Assembly: GCA_001179505.1 (NCBI GenBank)
Contig: CDMY01000654.1
Span: forward strand, 1-36,070
From: Vitrella brassicaformis CCMP3155
Taxonomy: Eukaryota; Protista; Chromerida
DNA: 36,070 nucleotides
Direction: 5' to 3'
Below the pieces are notes generated by a model. It searched no databases, was not told the origin of the DNA, and worked only from the letters and a program-made list of their open reading frames with translations. Below, one piece after another: positions 1 to 19,630 of the stretch (within the stretch, counting starts at the first letter, position 1; each line of letters begins with the position of its first letter). The position numbers were made by a program, and so were the translations under genes.

Positions 1-132
1 AGAGTCCACGTAGGACATGTAGTATGCGTCAGTCCATCCTGTCTGACGTCCTGTCCGCCATGGCCTGTCTCATGGAACGGACAAAGACTCAACAGCCGTC
101 CTGTCTCACAGATCAGTGGATCGTCGGTCTAT

Positions 133-153
133 GAACCCTAGACCCTAAACCCT
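133..153. repeat. three telomere-like heptamers (GAACCCT AGACCCT AAACCCT)
   Basis: Read directly. Reverse complement is AGGGTTT AGGGTCT AGGGTTC; AGGGTTT and AGGGTTC are the Plasmodium-type telomere units. Only 3 units. Confidence 0.4.
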
Positions 154-500
154 GGACCGACTTGCACTTCTGACAATTATTTGCGTGGATCTTTGTCTTT
201 TGCACTCTAAGCTCGCGGTCCTTGCCGATCGCTGTCGTGGGGTTTTTCCCATTGGAGGTGCGTATGGAGGCTGCTGTCATGCTCATCTGGACGCTGATTA
301 CGCGGGGGGTCTGCGAAATCGGTGAATGCTTGTGTGCAGCAGCAGGCGGCAGACAGACAGATGAACGGACAGAACAGATAAGTGCAAATCAGTTTGAGCA
401 GATGGATCTGGATGCATTGCTGTATGTCTTGTGAAGGCTCGACCGGCCGACCGACCGACCGAGACCCACACACACGCACACACATCGAGAAACATACAGG

Positions 501-3500
501 CTATCGATACAGCTGGGTGCCCAGGGCGTGTTGCTTCGAGTACTCCCAGATGCACAGCGCCCCACTCACGTGCACATTCAGCGACCGAATCACGCCCATC
601 TGAGGGATCTCCACGCAGTGGTCCAGCAGGTGCAGCATGTCCGCCGGCACGCCCTCCTTCTCCGCACCCAGCAGCAGCACACACCGCTGCGGGAAGACGA
701 AGGACGTCAGCTGCACCGATGTGGCGCTCTGCTCGACACCCACACACTGGTAGCCTTCACGCCGGCGGGCCTGCACGTAGGCAGGGAGAGAAGACGCCTC
801 CACCTGCACACACACACACACACACAGAAACATCGAGACACGAAGAGCGGTGTGTCCGCTGTCTGCTGATGGTGTACCTCTGTAATGGGCAGCCAGCGGT
901 CGGCCGTGACGGCAATGGCCTTGAATGAGGGGTCACGCAACACCGACTTTTTGGGCACCACCAGACACCTGCACGAGCGCACGAGGATGGGAGAAGCTTG
1001 TCGCTTCCCACGGATTCACTCCTTCTTCCTTCTCACTTGGCATTGAAGACCTCAGCAGTCCGTGTGAGGCCCGCCAGGTTGGGGACCCGGTCGATGAGTG
1101 ACGCCACCACAATCAGCTCGCTTCTCACACGGGCGCCATAGCCGCCCCGTCCCTGGCCGCAATCTCCTTCAATGTGGCTGACGGCCCAGGGGGTGAATTT
1201 GCGCTGCCACGCGAGAGCGCCGTCATCTGCACTGCTGGGATCTGGTCGTGTGCTGGCCACTGGCGGAGTGTCGATCGGCACTGAGTCGGCCAGAGGGGCC
1301 GGCAGGGGAGGGGGAGCCGAGGATGCCTTGAAGGGCTCGTCGTATTGGAGGACCTCGGTGGTCATTTCCTCTCGGATGGACACCCTGACGACAGGAAACG
1401 AGGAGGGCATGAGGGCACCCACGCCACCCCTGTGTGTGCGATGCTGACATCATGGTTGAGATGAACGACCAGCTTGGGCGCAGGTCGTCGTCCATCCACA
1501 CGGGCGCACCGCCAGGCTGGCCGGCGAGACTCTCATCGGTCGGCACATCGACCTCCCGCGGCATCGGACCGCCCTCTGAACACACACACACACACACACG
1601 CCCACACACACGGACACAGACAAACACGTCGATAAAGAGCAGCCACGACACACCGACTGACCTGGCAGAAGGACCTCGATATTGCACTCACTGAAAGGGT
1701 CCAGCAGGTCCCAGATGAGAGTCGTCCGCTGCCGCACCTTGGAGGCCTCCCTGCTCTCAGCCAGGTACCGCACCACACCACACAGCAGCGCACGGCCCGC
1801 CTTGGTGACGAACGGGGTGTTTGCTGCACCATCAGTGGCGGTGAAGGCTGAGGCTCCGTCGCTAGAGGGCGTGTTGATGAGGTGCTGCAGGAGTCTGTGC
1901 AGGGTCACTTGTGTGGGGATGCGGAGGGGGGCGAAGTTGCTCGTCAAGTACGGCAGGAGGGCTGCAAAGACACACATCGCAATTGCCACGACAGTGACGA
2001 TGGATTGGACCGACGTGTGTTGCCCTGTGTCTTGCTGACCTTCGAGTATCTGCCAGCAGACCTCTGTGTTTCGTGCGACGTCGCTTGATGGACCTGCTGA
2101 CCCATGGGTAGCCGAGAACGCCATAGGCAGATGCAGCAGCATGTAGCCGGCCACCTGAAAGACATGCACGCACTCACACGTACGCATATACCGGCAACGC
2201 CTCTCTCGCACCGTGACAAATGTGGTCTGGCATTGCACGGTGAATTCCGTCCTTGTCAGCCCTTCCACCAGCCGCCCCGCCACACCCGACGGATGCCTCA
2301 CACCAACCGCACACCCAACCAGGTCGATGTAATGCCGCACATCCGGGAAATGTGCACACGATGCGTGACGGAACACAAAATCCGCCAGCTGCTCGAGCGT
2401 CGATGTGTCGCGGCCTTCATCGTCACCGAGAACGTATTGGACGACGCACGCCAGCGATTGCCACCCCCTGATCTGAATGCGGTGGTAGAGGCTGTTGGGC
2501 ATGGCTGCCGATGGGGCGGCTGTGGGCTTGTCAGCCGACTTCTTGATGCCCTTCTTCTCATCGGGCGGCCGCCTGATATCCTCCAAATTCTGGTCGAGCC
2601 GACGGGTAAGCGCCGACACAGTCGCCCGCACGAATCGCTGTGCACTGAGAGAGACAGACCTGCACACAACGAACAGCGTATCCAATCCAGCTGTCTTTCA
2701 TGTGCGGCTTGCTTACCCTTCTCGCACAGCTCTCCCAAGGCCGTCGATGAAGCACAAGGCCAGCACACGAGCAAGCGCTGACGACTCCACGAAAGCGCGG
2801 ATATCAATGTTGGCAGCTTCAGACGAGGGAAACCACGCAGGCGGCCGAATAGGTGACACATCGTCACCAGCACCATCACCGCAGCTGACATAAGGAGGGT
2901 CTGATGGATGCCGCGCGTGAGTGTCGCTGCTGCTGCTGGCCGCGAACACATCAAGAGGCCGGCTCTGCGCGCCGTCTTGCAGGACGCCTTCACGCGCCAC
3001 CAGCAGCTCCGCCAGTGCACTCACGTAAGGCTCCATGGCGGCATCAGGGAGGTCACCACACGACGGCGAGGCCCACAGACGAGCCAACGCCGAGAGGAAA
3101 GGAACTGCATACACAGACATGATTCAACAGACACGCGTCATGTGTTGGCCTCTTGGTGTGGTGTGGGTGGGATACCTGTGGCTGCCCGCGTGACGCCAAG
3201 GCACTGGTCGCCGAGGGAAAGGCCGCGACGGAGCGACGTGAGAACAGGGCGGGCTTCGGCGGGCTCTCCTTCCGCGTACAGGTGTGCCTCGGCGTCGATC
3301 GTGAGCGCGTTGAAGACCGTCAAGCTCAGCTCGCGAAGCAGCTGTGGCGCACAAACGACGACGCACCATCACAAGAGCAGACAAGGCGGCACGTGTGTTC
3401 AGCCAGCCGACATACGTACCTCGTTTGTGCCGAGGGACAGCTGGATGTCCTCCAGGTACCGCCACACACTCCCACACAGACACTCCAGCGCCTCTCGCAG

Positions 3501-6500
3501 AGCCGCCCTCCTCCCCTGGTCGGTCTCGTCGCCCACACGGCTGAAGAGAATCGGCAGTGCCAGCCATCTCACCGCTCGCAATAGGACACTTGCCGCACCA
3601 GCCTCACAAGCGTCCAGACGGTCCATGAGCGACCGCGCAAAGCACTCGGTTGCCGTGAGAGGGGAGGAGGGGGCTGTTGGGGGAAGGGGAAAGGACGGCA
3701 GCAGCGTCATCAGGAGGGGGGTGCTTGTGTTGGCTGCTGGCGGGTTGGATCGGTCGCCCATGGCTGCGAGTCTTGCTATGGCGAGGTACTGAGAGACGAA
3801 GAAATGGTCCCGGACATCTCGCCAAGTGCGCCATGGCCCGCCCCCCTGCACAGGTAGATAGCCAGGCAGCTCCTTCAACGATGTCGGCAGTATATAATTC
3901 TGGCGGCGACCTACCTCTCTGATTCGCGTGGATGATTCGCGGCTCTCCCTCGCTGAGACACATGACAACCAGGAAGACAGCTGCCATCAGGCGCCGCTCG
4001 TTCCATCTTGCCTGCCTGCCTGCCCACCTACTTTTAAGTACCTGTGGTCACCCCCTCGGCACCCTGCAGCACTTGCAGCACCGATGACGACTCTCCTTCA
4101 CCGCTATGCTCCTCTCCCCCCTGCTGTATCAGCAGCCGGATGTCTTTGCCCTCAGCGCGCGACATGGCTGGCCGCGGTGGCGATGCAGCCGAGATGGAGA
4201 CGAAGACAGAGGGGAGGAGGGGGGAGGAGGGGCTACAGGTGGGGGTCAGGGCGGCGATGAGACCTGACGGAAGACATCTTAATCGCTTTGGTGTCGGGTT
4301 TGTGAGCGAGTGGATGAGGGGGTTGGCTGACCGGAGGCAAATGACGCCAGGATGGCCGTATCTGGAACAAGGGAAAGAAATATAGTGTGCATCCACGCGT
4401 GTGTGCATTGCGATCCCGTCATACCGATGCTGGCTGGTGCATCGGGTGAACACGCAGAACTGAGCAGCCGGTGAGCCGTAGCCAGCAGCTCCTCAGCACT
4501 GTTACAGACGCGCCCCTGGTAAGGTCGGCTCGGCTCCATGTGTCCATGCAGCTTACCCACCGTGGCAGCTGTGTGTGGAGTCGTGTTGCGAGCGCATCAA
4601 CGACCCATATCAACAGATACCCACACTCACACAAATCCACACACACGCGACCACACTCTGACATAGGGAACGAAGGGAGGGAAGGCACAAACAGACAGAC
4701 AGACAGACCGACCTGTGTGTACGCCTTTGGTGGTTTCCATGGGCGTACACCTGGCATGTACCTGTGTTTTGTTGCTGGCTCGAGCCGCATGCGGCCAGGC
4801 ACTCCTCCGCCTTCATCGCCACATACGACATCACCTCGACAGCCACACGCTTAACGAACACACACACGCACACACACACACACACACACGTGCCTTCTTC
4901 TCGCGGAGAAGCCGAAGGGTCGTCTATCTACCTGGAGTGCCGCCGCATCAGCCGCCATGAATGTGGGCATGTGTGTGAGCAGGTAGGAGAAGATGTACAG
5001 GCGGCACCGGACGGCGGCAGCGGGGAGATACGAGTGGCTGTACACCTGAGCGAGCAGAGGAGATGGGATGGATAAGCGAGATACGACACAGGCAGCTGGT
5101 GTACCTACCTGGAGAACGGACGTCTCCAGGGCAGGGAGTGATTGCTGCAAGAGGGGGGGGGGGGGTNNNNNNNNNNNNNNNNNNNNNNNNNNNNNNNNNN
5201 NNNNNNNNNNNNNNNNNNNNNNNNNNNNNNNNNNNNNNNNNNNNNNNNNNNNNNNNNNNNNNNNNNNNNNNNNNNNNNNNNNNNNNNNNNNNNNNNNNNN
5301 NNNNNNNNNNNNNNNNNNNNNNNNNNNNNNNNNNNNNNNNNNNNNNNNNNNNNNNNNNNNNNNNNNNNNNNNNNNNNNNNNNNNNNNNNNNNNNNNNNNN
5401 NNNNNNNNNNNNNNNNNNNNNNNNNNNNNNNNNNNNNNNNNNNNNNNNNNNNNNNNNNNNNNNNNNGGGGGGGGGGGGGTTGCACACACGTGCAAGGTGA
5501 GCAACGGATTGTTCGGTGCGCGCGGTGTTCTGTTTGTCACCTTGGTGAGATCGTGTGTGCCATCCCCATCACACACGAGCATCAACCGGCCCAGCCCGCG
5601 ACACACCACCTGCAGCCATGCACCAGCGCCCGCATCAGCACAATGCAATCCACATTCTTCTCCTAAACCAACCCGGTCGGCGCTCCCGAGCTCCTTGACG
5701 CCCTCCACTTCGCCCTTGCCCAACACGCCCGCATAAACGCTCCAATACCAGTCCATGAGCGCCGCCCCATCGGGCCACATGGCCTTGACCGCTGCCTTCA
5801 TGAGACCACGGTCAGCCGGCCTGTCGACCAGGCGGTCAGGCAGGGAGGCAAAGAGGGCCACTGCTGTGGCGGGTGTGACCGAGCCGGGTGCCGTGTGGTT
5901 GGCGAGGATGCGTAGGAGGATGGAGTAGAGGGTGGGGCGCATGGCCACCGCGGCTTCTCGCATCTGGCGGGACGGCAGCTGACTGACCGGCCCTTTCACG
6001 TGCTCCTCCCTGAGCACACCGACACACAGCCAGACAGACAGCCGAATCAGCGGGGAGAGGGGAACGTTCGAGAGACCCACTTGAGTGTCCTCGGTGTGCG
6101 GCCGTCGTCAGTCGGCAGGTCGGCCAGCACCTCGAGGAACAGCCGAAGAGGCGTCGCGTTGACCACATTGGCCACCACAAAAGACAGATAGCGGGGCACG
6201 GCGAAATGAGGGTCCGGATGGGCCTTCAGCGTCTCGTGCACGAAGAGCCTCACGCTCCTTTCCATCGCCGGCGCCTCCACACGCGACGCAAAAAGGCCAG
6301 GGTCCGCCAGGGCCACCAGCAGACGGTCAAATAGAAAGCTATCGGTGAATCGGAAGCCGCCCTTGTCCTCGGCTGTGGCCATGGTGTCCATCAGCGACGT
6401 GAGGACGAACTTAGTCACATTGCCGTTCTCATGTGTGAGGGCCCGCAGCACCAGACACTCCACCCACAGCGGCTGCATCGATGTCAAAGGGGTGGAGTCG

Positions 6501-11792: not shown

Positions 11793-14422
11793 TCACATGC
11801 CGGGGAAGCCGCCAGGGAAGCCGCCCGGCATGCCGCCACCAGGCATCCCGCCTGGCATGCCGCCCGGCATCCCGCCGCCGGGCATGCCACCGCCGCCCAT
11901 CCCGCCGCCGAACTTGCCCATGAGCTTCTGGAACACCTTCTGGAAGGCCGGGTCGCTCATGTACTGTCATGTCAACACACACACACCATCCCCACACGAG
12001 ATGTGTGTGAGTGTGTGGAGGGGGGGGGGAGGGCCTTGACTGACCTCCATCATCTTGCCGGGGTTCTTCTGCACCTCCTCCAGCTTCTTGGCCAGCTGAT
12101 AGATCACACACACACACAAACCGCACCAGCGGATGGAGGGGTGCCATGACGTGCTTTGTACGCATGTGCCATGTGTGCACTGAACACACTTACCGAGGGG
12201 TCTTTGGTGATTTCCTCCGCGATCTCAGGGTCCCGCAGCAAAGTCTGCACGAAGTTCATGGGGTTCCCACCACCACCACCACCAGGCATCCCGCCCGCAC
12301 CAGCACCAGGCATACCTGCCCCACACCACCCCACACCAACAGACAGACACACAGGTGTTGTCGAAGAGAAGACAGTGTGTCGTCTGTGCCGACCGACCTA
12401 CCCGAGAAGTCGAGGTCGGGCATGTCGTCGTCATCCTCTTGCACGTTGGCACGGCTCTTCTTCTGCTCCTCCTCCTGACGCTTCTGCTCCTCGTAGCTGA
12501 ACCGCCCAGGAACAACACACGACACACACCATCCACACACGTGGCTGCTGTCGTCATTGGTGTGGTGTGGTGTGGTGTGTTGCGCGCACCGTCGCTGAGC
12601 CTCGGCCTTGCGGCGCCTCATCTCCTTCTCGCGCTTCTTGCGCTCCTTCTGCAGCCAGACAGGCACACAGACGAGGGCCTTGTCTGTGTGTTGTCCATGT
12701 GTGTATGTGGCTGTGTTGGCAGGTGCCGACCTCCTCCTGCTTGCGCTGCTTCATCCGTCGCTTATCGTCGAGTTTGGCGAACTTCTCGTCGACCAGCTTC
12801 TGCAACTCCCACACGCCCTCGTCGTAGTCAATCTGGAGAGCATTAGAAGCAGGCAGGACACAACACCGACGGCCTTGCTGCGTGCCTGCGTCTGCCTGTC
12901 TGTCCCTCACGCACCTTCTGGCCGAGGTCGAGGTCGCGATGGGCCTCCTCCCAGTGGCCCAAATAGCTGCGCGCACACACGCAGACACACGCAGACGGCC
13001 ATTTCATCTCTGCCCACAGCTAATACATGTGCCTGTGGTTGGCTTGGCTTGGCTTGGCTGACCGGTATGCCTTTCCTCTGATGCGGTACGCCTTGCCGTT
13101 GTCGGGGTTGATCTTGAGGGCCTCGTCGCAGTCACGGATACACGCTGCACACATGGACACAGGCAGACACACATACACACAGATCGATCTCTCCCTCTCT
13201 CTCTCCCTCTGTGTGCGCGTGTGTGTGTGTGGTCAGAAAAAAAAGCGGCTTACCCATGGGTTTTTGGGCCTTGAGGAGGACGTCAGCTCGCTTGGTGTAG
13301 AGGAGGGCCGTGGGGTTGCCCATCTCAACCACCTCAGTCAACTTCAACACCGCCATCACGTAGTCACCGTTCTGACACACACAACACACACACGGAGAAA
13401 CAGATGCCCCGGCTCCCGGGAGTTCCGCTGCGTGTCCGTTCTTTCTCACCTCGATGGCCTCCTGTGCGGCCTCCTTGAGGTCGCTGATCTTGGTGTACTG
13501 ACCCAACACACACCACACCATACACAGACAGACAGAGGCATGCCCTCAATCCCCCGCACATGCGCCCGTGTCCTCCCTGCCCACCCCACCTGTTCGTCGG
13601 TGAACTCGACTTCCCCTGCAGGGGCCAGCGAAGGGAACTCACTCGACTCGTCAGGAGCCATCAGATCGGGGTCATCCTGACACATGCACACACACACACA
13701 CACACATACGTGCGGGAGTCAAGTGCATTGAGGTGCGTGTGGATGGGACGGGGGGGGAGAAGGGGATGCGTGTCAGTGGTCGCGTACCTCCTCGGGTTCG
13801 TTCTCTTCGATCTCCTCGTCCTCCTCTTCCTCATCCTCCTCGGGCTCGTTGTCCTCCTCCATCCTCTCGGTGGTGGTGGTCGGCTTGCCGTTCTTCATCG
13901 GCTCATCTGGACAGCCACAACCACACACACATATATACACACAGACAGAGGGCAGCCATCCACACAATCAGCCTTCTAATGCACACCCTACCCTCATCGG
14001 CTTCTTCGACGTCGTCTTCCTTGCCCTCGGGCTTGGGCGGTATGGTGGCGCCGAGGCTCCGGAGGTAGTCGGTGAAGAACTGCAGCTTCGGCTCGTGCAG
14101 CACCTCGGGCGTCTGCTTCAGCAACGCAACGAAGTCCTTCAACGCAGCGACTGAAGCACACACACACAGCGGCAGAGGGACAGGACACGATAAGCCACAG
14201 ACAAGGAGCGAGACACCCATCATCTTCCTGCCCAGGTGACACCGCCAGCCGGCACCTGGTCAACATGCGCCCTCTCCCTGTCTGCGTTGCTGCCTGTTTG
14301 TGTGTCGGTGGTGACATGACAGTCACATCTGTGCCGCGAGGAGCCCAGCCCTCCGTCGCCTGCGCTTTGTCTGCCTTGTGTGTGTCCCCTCTGCGCTCAC
14401 TTTTGTTCGGGTCGATGCTCAT
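11793..14422 (-). CDS. ST13: Hsc70-interacting protein (HIP/ST13): N-terminal dimerisation domain, TPR domain, STI1 domain, GGMP repeats; multi-exon
   Basis: Exon 1 (14422-14401, MSIDPNK) splices in phase 1 to [38 protein letters not shown]. It is followed by acidic linker DDPDLM, TPR exons ([20 protein letters not shown]; [25 protein letters not shown]), [21 protein letters not shown] and GGMP/GGFP repeats. TGA at 11793-11795. Confidence 0.92.
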
Positions 14423-14559
14423 GGTCTCGGACGAGCGGGGCATCAAGCGCAGAACAGATGATGAATCAGAAAGCTGGCAGAGAGCTCAGATCTCACACCA
14501 CACAGAGGTGCTGGCCTCTCTGCAACACTTCTCCAACTTCCTACAAGTCGGCCGCGAGA

Positions 14560-16778
14560 AATGCGAGCTCAAAGTGGCCCATGTGTGCATCTGTTCGCGC
14601 CCTTTCTGATGCGGACAAGTCACGTCTGTATGTGTGTGGGTTTCGTACGCTAATGGGGATTGACTGGGAGTGGTTTTCGAGTGCATTTCGTAAGGCTGTC
14701 GGTACAATACAACACATGCGTGTCTGGAGGCCTCGTGTGTTCCGGCGTGTGCATGTCCCATTGATGTTGAATGACGTGGCACCGTTTCGTCAGGCTGTAT
14801 TGTCGGTCACTCGCCTGCTACTCACTAATCTATCCACCTCCACTTCCATGTATCATGTTGAGGCTGCCTTTATCCCGTCGACGTGTCCATCTCTCACATC
14901 GCTCTACTACAATGCCAAGCGTGTGGCATCTCTTCCTATGCATGAAGTGTCGTGTCCATGCAGTCTGCCTGCATGTGGTGCGTTTCCCAAGCTAGATGGT
15001 CATGTGTGTGCGCGTCTTAGCCAGCCCCTCATGCGTGAGTTGCTTGGTGTGCCTCTTCATTGGAATCGAAACAGTACTTGCCTACCTTCTTTTTCCGCTA
15101 TCACCCGTCAGTTCACTCGTATCGTCACACGCATCTTTCGTCGTATCTCTCAGCCAGTGCCACCCACCTCTATTTTGGACCTCTGTGCGCATGCGTCTCT
15201 TAAGCCAGTGTACGATCGGTTAGTTCAGACAGGTCAGTATGTACGTATTCATGATGTGTTGCGTCATGCATCCACACTTCGTCGTTTTGTTGCTGCACTT
15301 TTAGATAAGAGCAAGGGAGATATGGTTTGGATGTGTCCACTCATGTACATGCACGCCAACTGGCGCATACACCTGGCCAGTCCATCATATGTGCTGTCCA
15401 CATGTAATGATGATGTGGTGCTCAATGACTTTTCACGTCTGCCTCATTTTCTTGACGGCCCTCGCATTGCCAAGCCTCGTGTGTCCCACACATGGGGCGT
15501 GGCTGTGTTTTGGCTGAAGATGAAGGCGTTTCGCGTAGGTTTGCATTCATGGGATGATATGAAATGGCGACCACTTAACTCATACTACAAGCATCGTTTT
15601 GCGCGTGTGTACAATGATGTCGGTCGCATTTTGAGTATGTGGAACGATTGGAGAGAGGATCACTTCTCCTGTATGCGCATTGGTTCACTTTTTGACGCCC
15701 TTGCATCTCACAATCGTTTCATTCATAGCCACGCTGTACTCAATGGCTGTGTGCTGTCATCGTCTACCGTGCATGTCCATGATATTGGTAATTTTTACCC
15801 TAGCTGCCCACGTGATGACTCACTTGATGCGTTGCGTGCGCTCCATGACTACACTATCGCCCACACCCGCTATCGTTTTGTCAATGTGCCTCGTGCTCCT
15901 GCCTGGCCGTCCATCCGTTCATCTTCGCGTCTCTATCCGGGTCTGTATGGCTTTATGCGCCGTACTACCAGCACTCGTGTCAAACCCTTCTTCAGCACTA
16001 ACTGTAATTACTTTTCGTGTCGTACTTACACATTAGAGGATGTCCTTGATGTTGTGAAGCATGACTTGGCTTATAGTTACACATCGCTCAGTGGTCTGTT
16101 GCTGTATCAGCGTGAAGGGTTTGCACAGGGCAGTCAGCTCAGTCCAGGCCTAGCCAACATATTCGCTGCTCATCGTGAGCGACAATTTATCAATGGTCTA
16201 TCGTCGGATGAGCGTGAGGCTTTTCGGTTCTGTTTCGTACGTAGATGGATGGACGATCGTCTGCTGGTCGTGCCACCACATGCGTGTCTGCCTGCCCGCC
16301 TGCATGATGCGTTGAATGCAGTTGTCGATCGCTTGCTGGTACCCACTTTCTATCATGACAAATGTGTGTTAGAGAAGGATGAGTCAGGTGCGTATGTTGG
16401 CTGCGATGTGCACACTGATGCGACACAAGTCACTCTCTCACAACACAACCCTAATGCCCACTTGCTTACTCCCTATTCCTCTCACACTGTATTGCCTTTC
16501 ATTCGTTATGTTCATGCATGGTCGTCAATGTCTGCTGGTCGCAAGGCCCATCTCGTCTATAGCCACTTGCTACGTGTGCTCGATTACACGATGAAAGAAA
16601 AGGAGTGTCTGCTGCCGGCGCGGTTGCGTGACTGTCTTCATGAGTTGCGCTTGTTTGGGTATTCAGACAGGATGCTATCTCGTCAGCTATATCGTATCCT
16701 TCGCTTCTTCCCGTTTCTATCTTCTCTCGTAGAACTTGCTTCGTTCTTCTGATCGTGTCTGTTGTGTATCGCCGCATC
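14560..16778 (+). mobile_element. probable Penelope-like retroelement copy (5'-truncated or endonuclease-deficient)
   Basis: RT ORF lacking introns in an intron-dense region, visibly T-richer than neighbouring exons (not computed). Boundaries are approximate; an 8-bp direct repeat CCGCGAGA at 14552-14559 and 16779-16786 is a weak TSD candidate. Confidence 0.6.
14581..16752 (+). CDS. intronless reverse transcriptase, Penelope-like element (PLE)/TERT group, no recognisable endonuclease
   Basis: One uninterrupted frame. Motifs: CPC...DGHVC (14953-15009), DKSKG..WMCP..Y (from 15304), K.K...KWRPL, motif A VHDIGNFYPSCP (D at 15781), motif B' QREGFAQGSQLSPGLANI (16108-16161), motif C RRWMDDRLLV (WMDD 16246-16257), and a PLE-like thumb YVHAWSSMSAGRKAHLVYSHLLR...ELRLFGYSDRML. 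The start is uncertain (ATG 14581 or 14653). Confidence 0.85.
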   Translation: MCASVRALSDADKSRLYVCGFRTLMGIDWEWFSSAFRKAVGTIQHMRVWRPRVFRRVHVPLMLNDVAPFRQAVLSVTRLLLTNLSTSTSMYHVEAAFIPSTCPSLTSLYYNAKRVASLPMHEVSCPCSLPACGAFPKLDGHVCARLSQPLMRELLGVPLHWNRNSTCLPSFSAITRQFTRIVTRIFRRISQPVPPTSILDLCAHASLKPVYDRLVQTGQYVRIHDVLRHASTLRRFVAALLDKSKGDMVWMCPLMYMHANWRIHLASPSYVLSTCNDDVVLNDFSRLPHFLDGPRIAKPRVSHTWGVAVFWLKMKAFRVGLHSWDDMKWRPLNSYYKHRFARVYNDVGRILSMWNDWREDHFSCMRIGSLFDALASHNRFIHSHAVLNGCVLSSSTVHVHDIGNFYPSCPRDDSLDALRALHDYTIAHTRYRFVNVPRAPAWPSIRSSSRLYPGLYGFMRRTTSTRVKPFFSTNCNYFSCRTYTLEDVLDVVKHDLAYSYTSLSGLLLYQREGFAQGSQLSPGLANIFAAHRERQFINGLSSDEREAFRFCFVRRWMDDRLLVVPPHACLPARLHDALNAVVDRLLVPTFYHDKCVLEKDESGAYVGCDVHTDATQVTLSQHNPNAHLLTPYSSHTVLPFIRYVHAWSSMSAGRKAHLVYSHLLRVLDYTMKEKECLLPARLRDCLHELRLFGYSDRMLSRQLYRILRFFPFLSSLVELASFF

Positions 16779-17092
16779 CCGCGAGACTAATACCGCTGCG
16801 GTCAGCTGCCTTGACTCTTTTGCATGCTCAGCCAGTAGGCGTTTGCGATCTCATTCTTGGCAGACTTTGATACTCAATGGACGTGTGAGCGGTGTGAAGC
16901 ACGTCAAACTCACAGATCTTGATGGAGGATGGGATTGAACTGAACGCATCGCCTTTGCGCCACGGGTGAGTGGTGCACACAGGACACAGATCTGCCGACT
17001 TGCAGCTCGTTATGTGCTGATCTGCCCTCTGCTTGTTGCAGGTTTGGCTGCTGGCTGAAGCGAACCCAATAGCATACGATGATGCCGCCTGG

Positions 17093-18189
17093 ATGACGGC
17101 ATCTGCGCAGCGATACTCCTCTAGGCGCTCTCGAGCGTTGCCGTCGTCAGTCGCGTTGATGGTGGCTCCTCTGGCCGCATTCATCTCTGCTGATGCAGCT
17201 GCTTTCCTTCCATCCAGCCACTGCCTTCTCGGGGCTTCCGGGCAAAGGCAGACAGGCGTCATCATGCGGAGGAGAGATTTCCCTCCAGTGCTGCAAGCAC
17301 TTGTGCCGACGCAGGAGAGTCCAACGGGTCAGGATGACGTCAACGTGGGTGTGGAGCAGCTCGTGCGGCGGGGCATGAGCCGCTTCGCTGAGGGCAGGGT
17401 GCAGGATTCGCTGAAGGACTTCAACACGGCCATGGAGAGGAGGTGCGACGGGACAAACACAACATGGATGATCGATGCCATGTGTCGTGTTGTGTTGTGT
17501 TGTGTTCTGTCTGTCTGTCTGTCTGTCTGTCATTCATCGGCAGGCCTTCGTTGTCTCCCTTCTTGTGGCAGCGTGGGATTTCGTTATATTATGTGGGGGA
17601 CTATGCCGAGGCGGCGGCACAGTTCAGGCGGGACGTGTCGGTCAACCCGAGCGACACAGAGGAGGTATGCAACCGTCGTCATGCTGGTTGGAGAGATGAA
17701 GAGGTGATGTGTGTGGTGTAGGCCATATGGGCCTTCTTATCTGAGAGCCGGCTATACGGTGACAGCCCGACCACTCACCGACAAGTCCTTGTGGCACCAA
17801 TGGCTCTTTCAGGTACTGACAAGGCCCGAGAGTCCCTTCTCACCATAAATGGTGAAAGGCGGCCGCTCCTGCAGCTGGTCTACGAGTCGCTGCGGGATGG
17901 CGGGGATTCACCGCGGCTCGACCAGCTGAAACGCATTGCAGACACGCAGAGGGGCGGGGCGTCATTCTACGCCTCGCTGTACCTTGGGCTGCTATACGAG
18001 GCGATGGGCGACGTGGGCGAATCGCGCCGGTGGATTGTGAGGGCCGCCGAGTCGCCGTATGCGAGTGAGAAGAAGGGGGCAGAGTGAGGATGGGCACGTA
18101 CACGGCTCTGGTGTGTGTGTGTTGCAGGTTCCGGTGACTACATGGGCGCGGTGGCGAAGGTGCACCGGATGGCACGGGGATGGTGGTGA
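17093..18189 (+). CDS. TPR-like protein of a plant/cyanobacterial family (NlpI-like repeats), possibly plastid-targeted; multi-exon
   Basis: Spliced product: VRRGMSRFAEGRVQDSLKDFNTAMER / PSLSPFLWQRGISLYYVGDYAEAAAQFRRDVSVNPSDTEE / AIWAFLSESRLYG...FYASLYLGLLYEAMGD...RAAESPYA / SSGDYMGAVAKVHRMARGWW*. N-terminus has a hydrophobic stretch ending ADAAAF-LP. The start codon is uncertain. Confidence 0.75.
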
Positions 18190-18341
18190 TGGAATGAGAT
18201 GCGGGCGATGCAGCCGATGGATGACGTCGTGTGCAGTTAGTCGGCCGATGAGCTGAGGTTTGTTGTTTGAAGATGCATGGGGGTGGATTGCATTCATGGG
18301 TAGAGAGAGAGACATGGGTTTGTGTGTCATATGATCGATCA

Positions 18342-19630
18342 TCAAGGCGATTGCGCGGGCGGACAAGATGAAGACACTCTCGTCAAATATAAAACGTAGG
18401 CAACGATAGACTCCTGCCTTCCCCTCCTACCTCCCCTCTCAAACCACCACCACCACCACGCACGCGTATCCTTGGCCTCTTCCTCATTCTCGTCGTCATC
18501 ATCGACAACGAAGCCCGGGAGGGTGGGGCTGGGGGGATGGTGGGGGTACTGGGGAGGGGTCTGGAACGGATTGCCGTTGGCCGTGGGCATCATGGTCTGG
18601 TTGGGGGGTGTGCGGAACCCGCTCTCCTCGTCGAGCTCGTCATCGTCAATAATGCCCGAGTTGCCCATTCCCTGCCCCTCCCCAGCCCCCTTGCCGTCCT
18701 CACCATTCTCGTGCTCATCTCTATCGCGGCCGGGGCTTCCCGGGGGCGTCACGTCGGGGATGGCGACGCTACCAGCACCTGCTTGGCCACCTGCTTGGCC
18801 ACCATCACCACCGGCATCTCTCCCGCTCTCTGTGTTGGGCGGCGGTGTCTCGTCACCCAGGCGGCTCGACAGACGTACCCGCTCTAGACGTGTCTGTGTG
18901 GACAAACAGTATCCATGAAGCGTCTTTTGTCTGTCATCCGTGGTCAACTGGTGGTGTCTATACCTTGTAGTGGTCCTCTAGAATGCGCGGGTCGTCGCCA
19001 TCGATGACAACCCCGACGACACTGTCTCTCTCCCGCACTGCGAAGTTGCACTGGCCGTTGAATGCCGTCTCACAGACGTCGGGTTGCTCGTCGTACCGGC
19101 AGGTGAGACAGCACACGAGCCCAACCTGAGAAGGCCAAGACACACAGGGTGATCCATCCATCCAATACAGAACTACCAAGATAAACCTTGATGCATGCGT
19201 CCGTACCCCCACTATGTCGTCGCACCGCGCCCTCCCCGCAGCGACACCACGACGTATGGCGGCGAGGACGTCTTTGAAGTTGGAGTTGAGTGTGGCTGCG
19301 ATTGTGAGCGGATAGAAACTCAGTTCCAGGGCCACCACCCCCTGCCTGTGTCTGTCCTCGATGGCCTCCGCAACCACGCGCTCAAGCACCTCCACCGAGT
19401 CTGCACATATTCATGAATAAGTCACGCCACACAGAATGACATACACAATAGGACGCAAACCCAGGGCTGGTTCGTGTGTGTGTGTGTGTGGACTGTGCGC
19501 ACCGAGTATTTTCGCGATGCGATCAAACACCTCCCTGATGGTCTCGGTTTCCCTGTTGGTTTCGGTTTGGGGGTAGGCCTTGCTTGCCACCACCACCGCA
19601 CTGGCCTTGGCCTCGCGCAACTCGTCGGCT
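18342..19630 (-). pseudogene. ADA-like copy D: 5'-truncated, internally deleted adenosine-deaminase-fold gene fused downstream of copy C
   Basis: Exons TETNRETETIREVFDRIAKIL / DSVEVLERVVAEAIEDRHRQGVVALELSFYP... / VGLVCC...VVGVVIDGD / TRLERVR, then a jump into an acidic tail homologous to 26460-26760 of the plus copy. Near-identical to 23202-23855. Confidence 0.7.

Follow-up and report, generated by a model that had tools for sequence, protein, structure and literature searches.

A probable 5'-truncated insertion of a Penelope-like element with an N-terminal endonuclease in the chromerid Vitrella brassicaformis

The window analyzed here is the whole of contig CDMY01000654.1 (C654; 36,070 nucleotides) of Vitrella brassicaformis CCMP3155, and genome searches were made in the assembly of this strain (G000; 72,700,666 bp in 1064 contigs). 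Between a gene for an Hsp70-interacting protein (Hip) on the minus strand and a gene with tetratricopeptide repeats (TPR) on the plus strand, about 600 bp apart without it, lies an element encoding a reverse transcriptase (RT) of the kind found in Penelope-like elements (PLEs). The initial annotation, made from the sequence alone, had placed an intact PLE-type RT of about 720 codons at an internal site between genes, and both the position and the frame were recovered. The plus-strand frame is free of stops from 14320, with a first GTG at 14380 (790 amino acids [aa]) and a stop codon at 16750-16752; from the ATG at 14581 the open reading frame (ORF) has 723 codons, with every motif in its expected place. 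Conservation in the following list refers to alignment A3, which holds 48 sequences of RT relatives; the definition of the CxC motif is that given for Naiad and Chlamys PLEs (PMC8557442).

14581 to 16752, plus strand: ORF, 723 codons plus stop, ATG start, 95% aa identity to residues 414-1136 of protein P0001
14950 to 15006, plus strand: CxC...GH motif (SCPCS...GHV), diagnostic of Naiad/Chlamys PLEs, kept as CxC-x12-GH in A3
15301 to 15348, plus strand: DK(G) motif, DK-x2-G...C...Y, LDKSKGDMVWMCPLMY; D242 and C252 nearly invariant
15511 to 15588, plus strand: RT fingers motifs 1/2 (K.K...W...KWRPLNSY); K313 invariant, R330 and P331 nearly invariant
15769 to 15810, plus strand: RT motif A (VHVHDIGNFY); catalytic Asp D401 at 15781-15783, nearly invariant
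15811 to 16104, plus strand: long insertion of about 100 aa between motifs A and B, at the position of the insertion-in-fingers domain (IFD) of telomerase reverse transcriptase (TERT) and Chlamys, from motif spacing and the model
16105 to 16170, plus strand: RT motif B (QREGFAQGSQLSPGLA); G513 nearly invariant, G517 invariant
16234 to 16272, plus strand: RT motif C (FVRRWMDDRLLVV), RRWMDD, with WMDD at 16246-16257; R555, D558 and D559 nearly invariant
16534 to 16749, plus strand: helical thumb (model helices 652-720), with the GYSDRML-containing stretch at 16645-16689

Family-level sequence signal for this ORF was weak or absent, so the RT fold had to come from modelling. Pfam returned only RVT_1 at an E value of 0.05, below the cut-off, and PDB sequence searches with the window ORF and with profile A1 gave no matches. 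A word-index protein search with the ORF found two proteins only, both from the same organism, and 217 relatives came out of a profile search at E<=1e-3. The AlphaFold2 model, built with 48 homologues, had a predicted local distance difference test score (pLDDT) of 88.3 and a predicted template modelling score of 0.86, and in it the insertion between motifs A and B forms extra strands, a helix at 485-497 and a disordered loop at 438-469. In a Foldseek comparison with the PDB, the best 15 matches were all TERT (Candida, human, yeast, Tetrahymena, and Tribolium; best E 5.4e-10, 600-766 aligned columns), and group II intron, retron, and LINE RTs ranked after them, an order that reflects structural similarity and not phylogeny. 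Telomerase RTs have PLEs as their sister group. With TERT as the closest fold of a confident model, both the RT call and the Penelope-like character therefore stand. The Trp of WMDD had been singled out as unusual; it occurs in 30 of the 48 aligned relatives, the more distant of which have Tyr or Phe, and is a character of the clade rather than a mutation peculiar to the window copy.

What the window copy lacks is found in its longer relatives. P0001, a protein of 1136 aa encoded on a JGI transcriptome contig and thus transcribed, is 95% identical to the translated window frame over 732 aa (P0001 residues 405-1136) and has about 404-413 N-terminal residues beyond the window ORF. Its ORF is also encoded on contig C1049 of the Vitrella genome, in a paralogue 96% identical to the window copy. 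In P0001 a GIY-YIG endonuclease (aa ~229-327) precedes the CxC motif (aa ~537-539) and then the RT, and the same order is found in P0005, P0007, P0008, P0016, and P0048, among others. The GIY-YIG domain likewise precedes the RT in the copies on C33, C198, C249, and C234 (50-67% aa identity), as it does in every longer copy. The window copy begins at about residue 414 of this longer frame (ORF2), after the endonuclease and a linker rich in Lys and Arg (KR-rich) and before the CxC motif. No GIY-YIG domain or other part of the missing N-terminus is encoded in the window, where the 1136-aa P0001 matched only 14554-16749 in tblastn. The absence of a GIY-YIG motif at either end of the ORF had thus been correctly noted, but the endonuclease-less lineage drawn from it does not hold: since the C1049, C33, C198, C249, and C234 copies all have an N-terminal GIY-YIG domain, the loss is specific to the window copy, which has no endonuclease simply because the element's front part is gone.

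The endonuclease assignment draws on conservation and structure. In a 46-sequence alignment of the N-terminal domain, the G of YIG, an R, and an H are invariant, and two Tyr, a T, an E, and an N nearly so, which leaves the catalytic Y, Y, G, R, H, E, and N conserved. The domain was modelled with a pLDDT of 81 (core >90) and matched the catalytic domain of I-TevI with a Z score of 8.5 and a root-mean-square deviation of 1.9 A over 88 of 94 residues, followed by UvrC and R.Eco29kI. Pfam PF01541 was detected at E<=0.01 in 12 of the 46 aligned sequences, and in the Chara braunii protein GBG72634.1 the PF01541 match at 375-459 lies on the very segment aligned with the family profile; the endonuclease region of the Vitrella copy itself gave no GIY-YIG match in Pfam. 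The GIY-YIG core of the Vitrella copies is without a conserved Cys pair between GIY and YIG, the segment reading SPCTKHS once and SPWSTHS elsewhere. About 85 aa upstream of GIY, after a His-rich helix, lies a CxxC-x6-CxC cluster (RCSQCRCTWRMCRC), which may be a DNA-targeting zinc finger. It is kept in the Vitrella copies and their nearest relatives (15 by one count, Amoebophrya and 13 others by another) and is absent from the Chara braunii proteins.

P0001 aa 121-149, corresponding to about 4110-4196 of locus L002 (G000:C1049), minus strand: His-rich helix followed by CxxC-x6-CxC

The borders of the window copy were set by comparison with C1049. Homology begins abruptly at 14579-14582 and stops at 16922, and similarity is lost sharply on both sides. 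The ATG at 14581 coincides exactly with the truncation junction, at which the C1049 copy reads TTG (Leu), and a GGCC microhomology of 4 bp is all that the junction shows. Neither a target site duplication (TSD) nor a pseudo-long terminal repeat (pseudo-LTR) nor an adjoining microsatellite was found at the junctions of the window copy.

14579 to 16922, plus strand: 5'-truncated PLE copy of the N-terminal-endonuclease type, with the RT part of ORF2 and the 3' untranslated region (UTR); 96% DNA identity to G000:C1049:977-3319
14320 to 14580, plus strand: flank open by chance in the same frame for 87 codons, with ATGs at 14455 and 14458 and no similarity to the element
16753 to 16922, plus strand: 3' UTR; subfamilies conserve the final ~40 nt (GTGTGAGCGGTGTGAAGCACGTCAAACTCACAGATCTTGA), the 3' terminus at which every copy ends

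All copies end in ...CACAGATCTTG(A/G), and across subfamilies the last ~170 nt of the element show far higher conservation than the ORF. Scattered over the genome are at least 10 fragments of 40-170 bp that correspond to the 3' end of the element only (GTGTGAGCGGTGTGAAGCACGTCAAAGTCACAGATCTTG), each followed by unrelated, unique DNA (loci L023-L033). These are probably extreme 5' truncations, and a set of 3'-only fragments sharing one terminus is the signature of target-primed reverse transcription combined with heavy 5' truncation.

C394:43485-43541, C227:581623-581673, C529:10314-10371, C982:104485-104614, and C305:386016-386129: 3'-end fragments
Contigs C330, C380, C630, C770, and C646: further 3'-end fragments

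The 3' flanks of the window copy and of 10 fragments are unrelated and unique, and the satellite around the C1049 copy contains (TG)n; a bias towards (CA)n or (C)n targets was not evident at the junctions examined. Folding of the 3'-terminal alignment gave an invariant 6-bp stem (ACGTGT/GCACGT) with zero covariation, which is evidence neither for nor against a conserved structure. Neither a hammerhead ribozyme nor another Rfam family reached the gathering score in the window or in loci L002, L010, L005, and L009. The copies on C33, C198, and C249 are each preceded by a piece of about 130 bp of their own 3' end, in the manner of a pseudo-LTR. In three copies an additional frame of 439 aa, ORF1, lies directly upstream of ORF2, with 62% and 29% identity between copies.

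L018 (G000:C33) 4371-5690, C198:114235-115536, and C249:96297-97343: ORF1

ORF1 is absent from the window and from the sequence upstream of the C1049 copy (563 bp, including satellite units), so the C1049 copy may itself be incomplete. This copy sits in a satellite of about 60 bp with the unit ...GCGCATGCACGTGTCGACTTGG(TG)nTATATAATGAA..., found at 480-977, 4706-4765, and 5046-5105 of L002. The satellite has 220 matches, in arrays on dozens of contigs, and is independent of the element.

We read 14579-16922 as a 5'-truncated insertion of a PLE with an N-terminal endonuclease, with a probability of roughly 0.85. The full-length ORF2 comprises an N-terminal Cys cluster, the GIY-YIG endonuclease, the KR-rich linker, the CxC motif, a telomerase-like RT, and the thumb. 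The endonuclease of the element would nick the target, the RT would prime on the nick and reverse-transcribe the RNA of the element starting at its conserved 3' end, and synthesis or joining would end after about 2.3 kb, so that the inserted copy would consist of CxC motif, RT, thumb, and 3' UTR, without the endonuclease or the upstream ORF1. It would have landed in the divergent promoter region, ~600 bp long, that the Hip and TPR genes share. A frame that is still open would mean that the copy has spent little time as neutral sequence, and because it has no endonuclease, autonomous transposition would be impossible for it. We infer the timing, the lack of function, and the target-primed mechanism, the last from PLEs and other target-primed retroelements. 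The family to which the copy belongs is a low-copy PLE family that is transcribed.

Some observations weigh against the truncated insertion. Without a visible TSD or pseudo-LTR at the window copy, truncation during target-primed reverse transcription is indistinguishable from later deletion. The assembly is a short-read one in which repeats are poorly represented, and no closer "master" copy of the window sublineage is present in it. The ATG falls exactly at the junction. Between the window and C1049 copies the synonymous divergence (dS) is 0.106 and the nonsynonymous divergence (dN) 0.023, a dN/dS of 0.21 that fits selection too, and when aa changes were polarised with distant copies as reference, 10 were derived in the window copy, 7 in the C1049 copy, and 15 were ambiguous, a balanced distribution. 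Together these observations mean little neutral decay of the window copy, which selection on the copy would explain as well.

The missing integration signature bears on whether the element was inserted at full length and lost its 5' part, with ORF1 and the endonuclease, by a later deletion or rearrangement in the promoter region; the 4-bp GGCC microhomology fits either route. We consider this very unlikely, as heavy 5' truncation is usual in the family, with its at least 10 3'-only fragments sharing one terminus, and in PLEs generally (PMC8557442), and no remnant of the element lies upstream of the window copy.

An RT without an endonuclease is also what the endonuclease-deficient PLEs Athena and Coprina encode, and membership of such a lineage, using free DNA ends, would account for the window copy; a telomere-like stretch is present in the window as well, 14 kb off. 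This explanation is implausible in the extreme. Every longer copy of the family encodes a GIY-YIG domain before the RT, the CxC motif and the architecture are those of the clade with N-terminal endonucleases, and the window copy lies within the chromosome between two genes, with no telomeric repeat cap. In Athena and Coprina terms, the loss is secondary and confined to one copy of an endonuclease-bearing family. The telomere-like stretch itself, at window 135-158, is an interstitial repeat of three CCCTAAA-like units (CCCTAGACCCTAAACCCTGGA), 134 bp from the contig start, without a terminal array. An association of the element with telomeres was rejected on its place between two genes and the lack of an adjoining telomeric array.

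The remaining evidence concerns what has become of the copy since its insertion, and here the neighbouring genes and their transcripts are relevant.

13906 to 14223, minus strand: first coding exon of the divergent Hip gene; Pfam HipN, E 1.6e-15
16923 to 18408, plus strand: spliced TPR-repeat gene; Pfam TPR_2, E 5e-11; start codon at about 17159
To ~16965 (non-coding first exon), 17042-17443, 17542-17665, 17720-18066, and 18128-18408, plus strand: exons of the TPR gene, from cDNA contig L001

The cDNA contig L001 (JGI 3300017148, 1-5007) runs from the 3' end of the element through 16923 to ~16965 and is spliced from there to 17042 and three further exons, with 100% identity and GT..AG borders. 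The 3' part of the element is thus transcribed into the 5' UTR of the TPR mRNA. L001 is also a mosaic of two paralogous copies joined to the TPR gene, following the C1049 version and, at seven sites, the window version. Both copies contribute reads to it, and a transcript starting at the window ORF does not follow. The mosaic is a caution against taking assemblies of this kind as one single transcript. Pattern scans of metagenomes for the 5' and 3' junctions were blank; the 3'-junction pattern that is present in L001 was equally missed, so these blanks are uninformative.

These transcripts and the open frame raise the question of a co-opted, RT-only gene, expressed from the Hip/TPR promoter region with the ATG at the junction as its start and kept by selection for a host function like that of TERT or of the rvt genes. 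The ATG created at the junction is suggestive, all catalytic residues are retained in an uninterrupted frame of 723 codons, the dN/dS of 0.21 comes with no excess of aa changes on the window branch, no closer master copy is present in the assembly, and window-specific variants occur inside L001. Co-option is nevertheless unlikely. The neutral phase of the window copy corresponds to at most roughly 2% divergence; if about half of the 88 differences between the two copies fell on it, we estimate that only one or two stop codons would be expected, so the open frame is unremarkable. A dN/dS between two transposable element copies mostly mirrors selection on their active ancestors, and the low value here is largely inherited from these, the pairwise figure spanning more than the post-insertion branch; it is no proof of co-option. 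L001, being a mosaic, places only the 3' part of the element in the TPR mRNA and nothing across the 5' junction, and the genome shows the usual spectrum of truncated copies. That the window ORF has since been maintained by selection as a telomerase-like RT gene of the host is about as unlikely. Were this true, Vitrella would offer a naturally occurring case of a PLE RT heading to domestication. The initial annotation had left a recently active or a domesticated RT side by side; we see nothing specific in favour of domestication, and a truncated insertion remains our preferred reading.

What the window copy does at its locus is to supply the 5' UTR of the TPR gene, and perhaps promoter context too. 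On the other side of the element, (CA)n/(CACAGA)n-type microsatellites occur every ~170-350 bp at 12969-14183, in introns of the Hip gene and in its flanks, without adjoining the element anywhere.

PLEs with an N-terminal GIY-YIG endonuclease were described by Craig, Yushenova, Rodriguez & Arkhipova in 2021 (PMC8557442), with Chlamys in green algae, streptophytes, Selaginella, and Physarum and Naiad in invertebrates; the main text and host list of that study include no alveolate. The Vitrella family resembles Chlamys in many respects. Its full-length paralogues run from GIY-YIG through a KR-rich linker and the CxC motif to the RT; the endonuclease is without the Cys pair of the CCHH arrangement in the GIY-YIG core while R, H, E, and N are kept; the DK motif reads DKS ("DK", not the DKA of Naiad); and the spacing between motifs A and B, at ~106 aa with extra modelled elements, may be long and IFD-like as well. 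Frequent 5' truncation, partial-tandem pseudo-LTRs, and the lack of a canonical hammerhead ribozyme are further likenesses, the last having been described for Naiad and most Chlamys (PMC8557442). It differs from Chlamys in its alveolate host, in the CxxC-x6-CxC cluster shared with its nearest relatives, where Chlamys is described without a Zn-finger linker upstream of the endonuclease, and in the 439-aa ORF1 before ORF2 in three copies. Chlamys is also biased to (CA)n/(C)n microsatellites; no such bias is evident at the Vitrella junctions examined, a possible further difference. With Naiad the family shares the N-terminal endonuclease, the CxC motif, a Cys-rich motif lying upstream of that domain, and the lack of a hammerhead ribozyme; Naiads, however, are metazoan and keep both CCHH in the GIY-YIG core and DKA, in contrast to the DKS and missing CCHH of Vitrella, and the Cys pattern of Naiad and Neptune is CX2-5CxxC rather than CxxC-x6-CxC.

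TERT, the best structural match of the window ORF, shares with it the long insertion between motifs A and B, but identity is only 10-14%, and the window ORF has the CxC motif and is followed by the 3' UTR of an element. The Vitrella family is moreover multi-copy, with truncated fragments, and has a GIY-YIG partner domain. On these grounds we rejected an identity of the ORF as the telomerase gene.

The resemblance to the Naiad/Chlamys group proposed in the initial annotation is therefore upheld by the CxC motif and by the paralogues whose GIY-YIG domains are N-terminal, and the Penelope-like RT and its internal site stand with it, whereas the endonuclease-less lineage, the peculiarity of WMDD, and the claim of an undescribed system do not, the architecture being already described (PMC8557442). 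The architecture is that of the N-terminal-endonuclease PLEs (Naiad/Chlamys type) of that study in a new host group, and the family, judged by these features, is possibly a new sub-branch of them. The table of transposable elements for Vitrella in Woo et al. 2015 (PMC4501334) has Copia, Gypsy, LINE, and other classes, and a text search of the supplementary files of that paper found no mention of Penelope or PLE. A literature search likewise found no paper reporting PLEs in alveolates, which is no proof of their absence.

Named relatives of the family are Amoebophrya sp. CAD7955066.1, with the same order of endonuclease and RT, and several Chara braunii proteins; most others are metagenome or transcriptome proteins. 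The Chara braunii proteins are the nearest named relatives outside the alveolates, and Chara braunii is a Chlamys host. The branch with N-terminal endonucleases has been known only since 2021, its reported hosts being animals, the green lineage, and Physarum (PMC8557442), and the chromerid family, together with its relative in the syndinean Amoebophrya, widens this host range to alveolates. Alveolate hosts fit, and support, either an ancient origin or a horizontal spread of the permuted architecture. The window copy, as an ordinary, dead-end truncated insertion, matters less in this respect than the family to which it belongs, whose CxxC-x6-CxC cluster, extra ORF1, and Trp in the YxDD box mark a sub-branch and are of interest for a reference alignment of PLEs. 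Other additions to the same endonuclease were seen in alignment A2, in which three distant relatives carry PCIF1_WW (best E 2.8e-11) and a CCHC zinc knuckle occurs in six, these being accessory domains that other branches of the PLE group possess.

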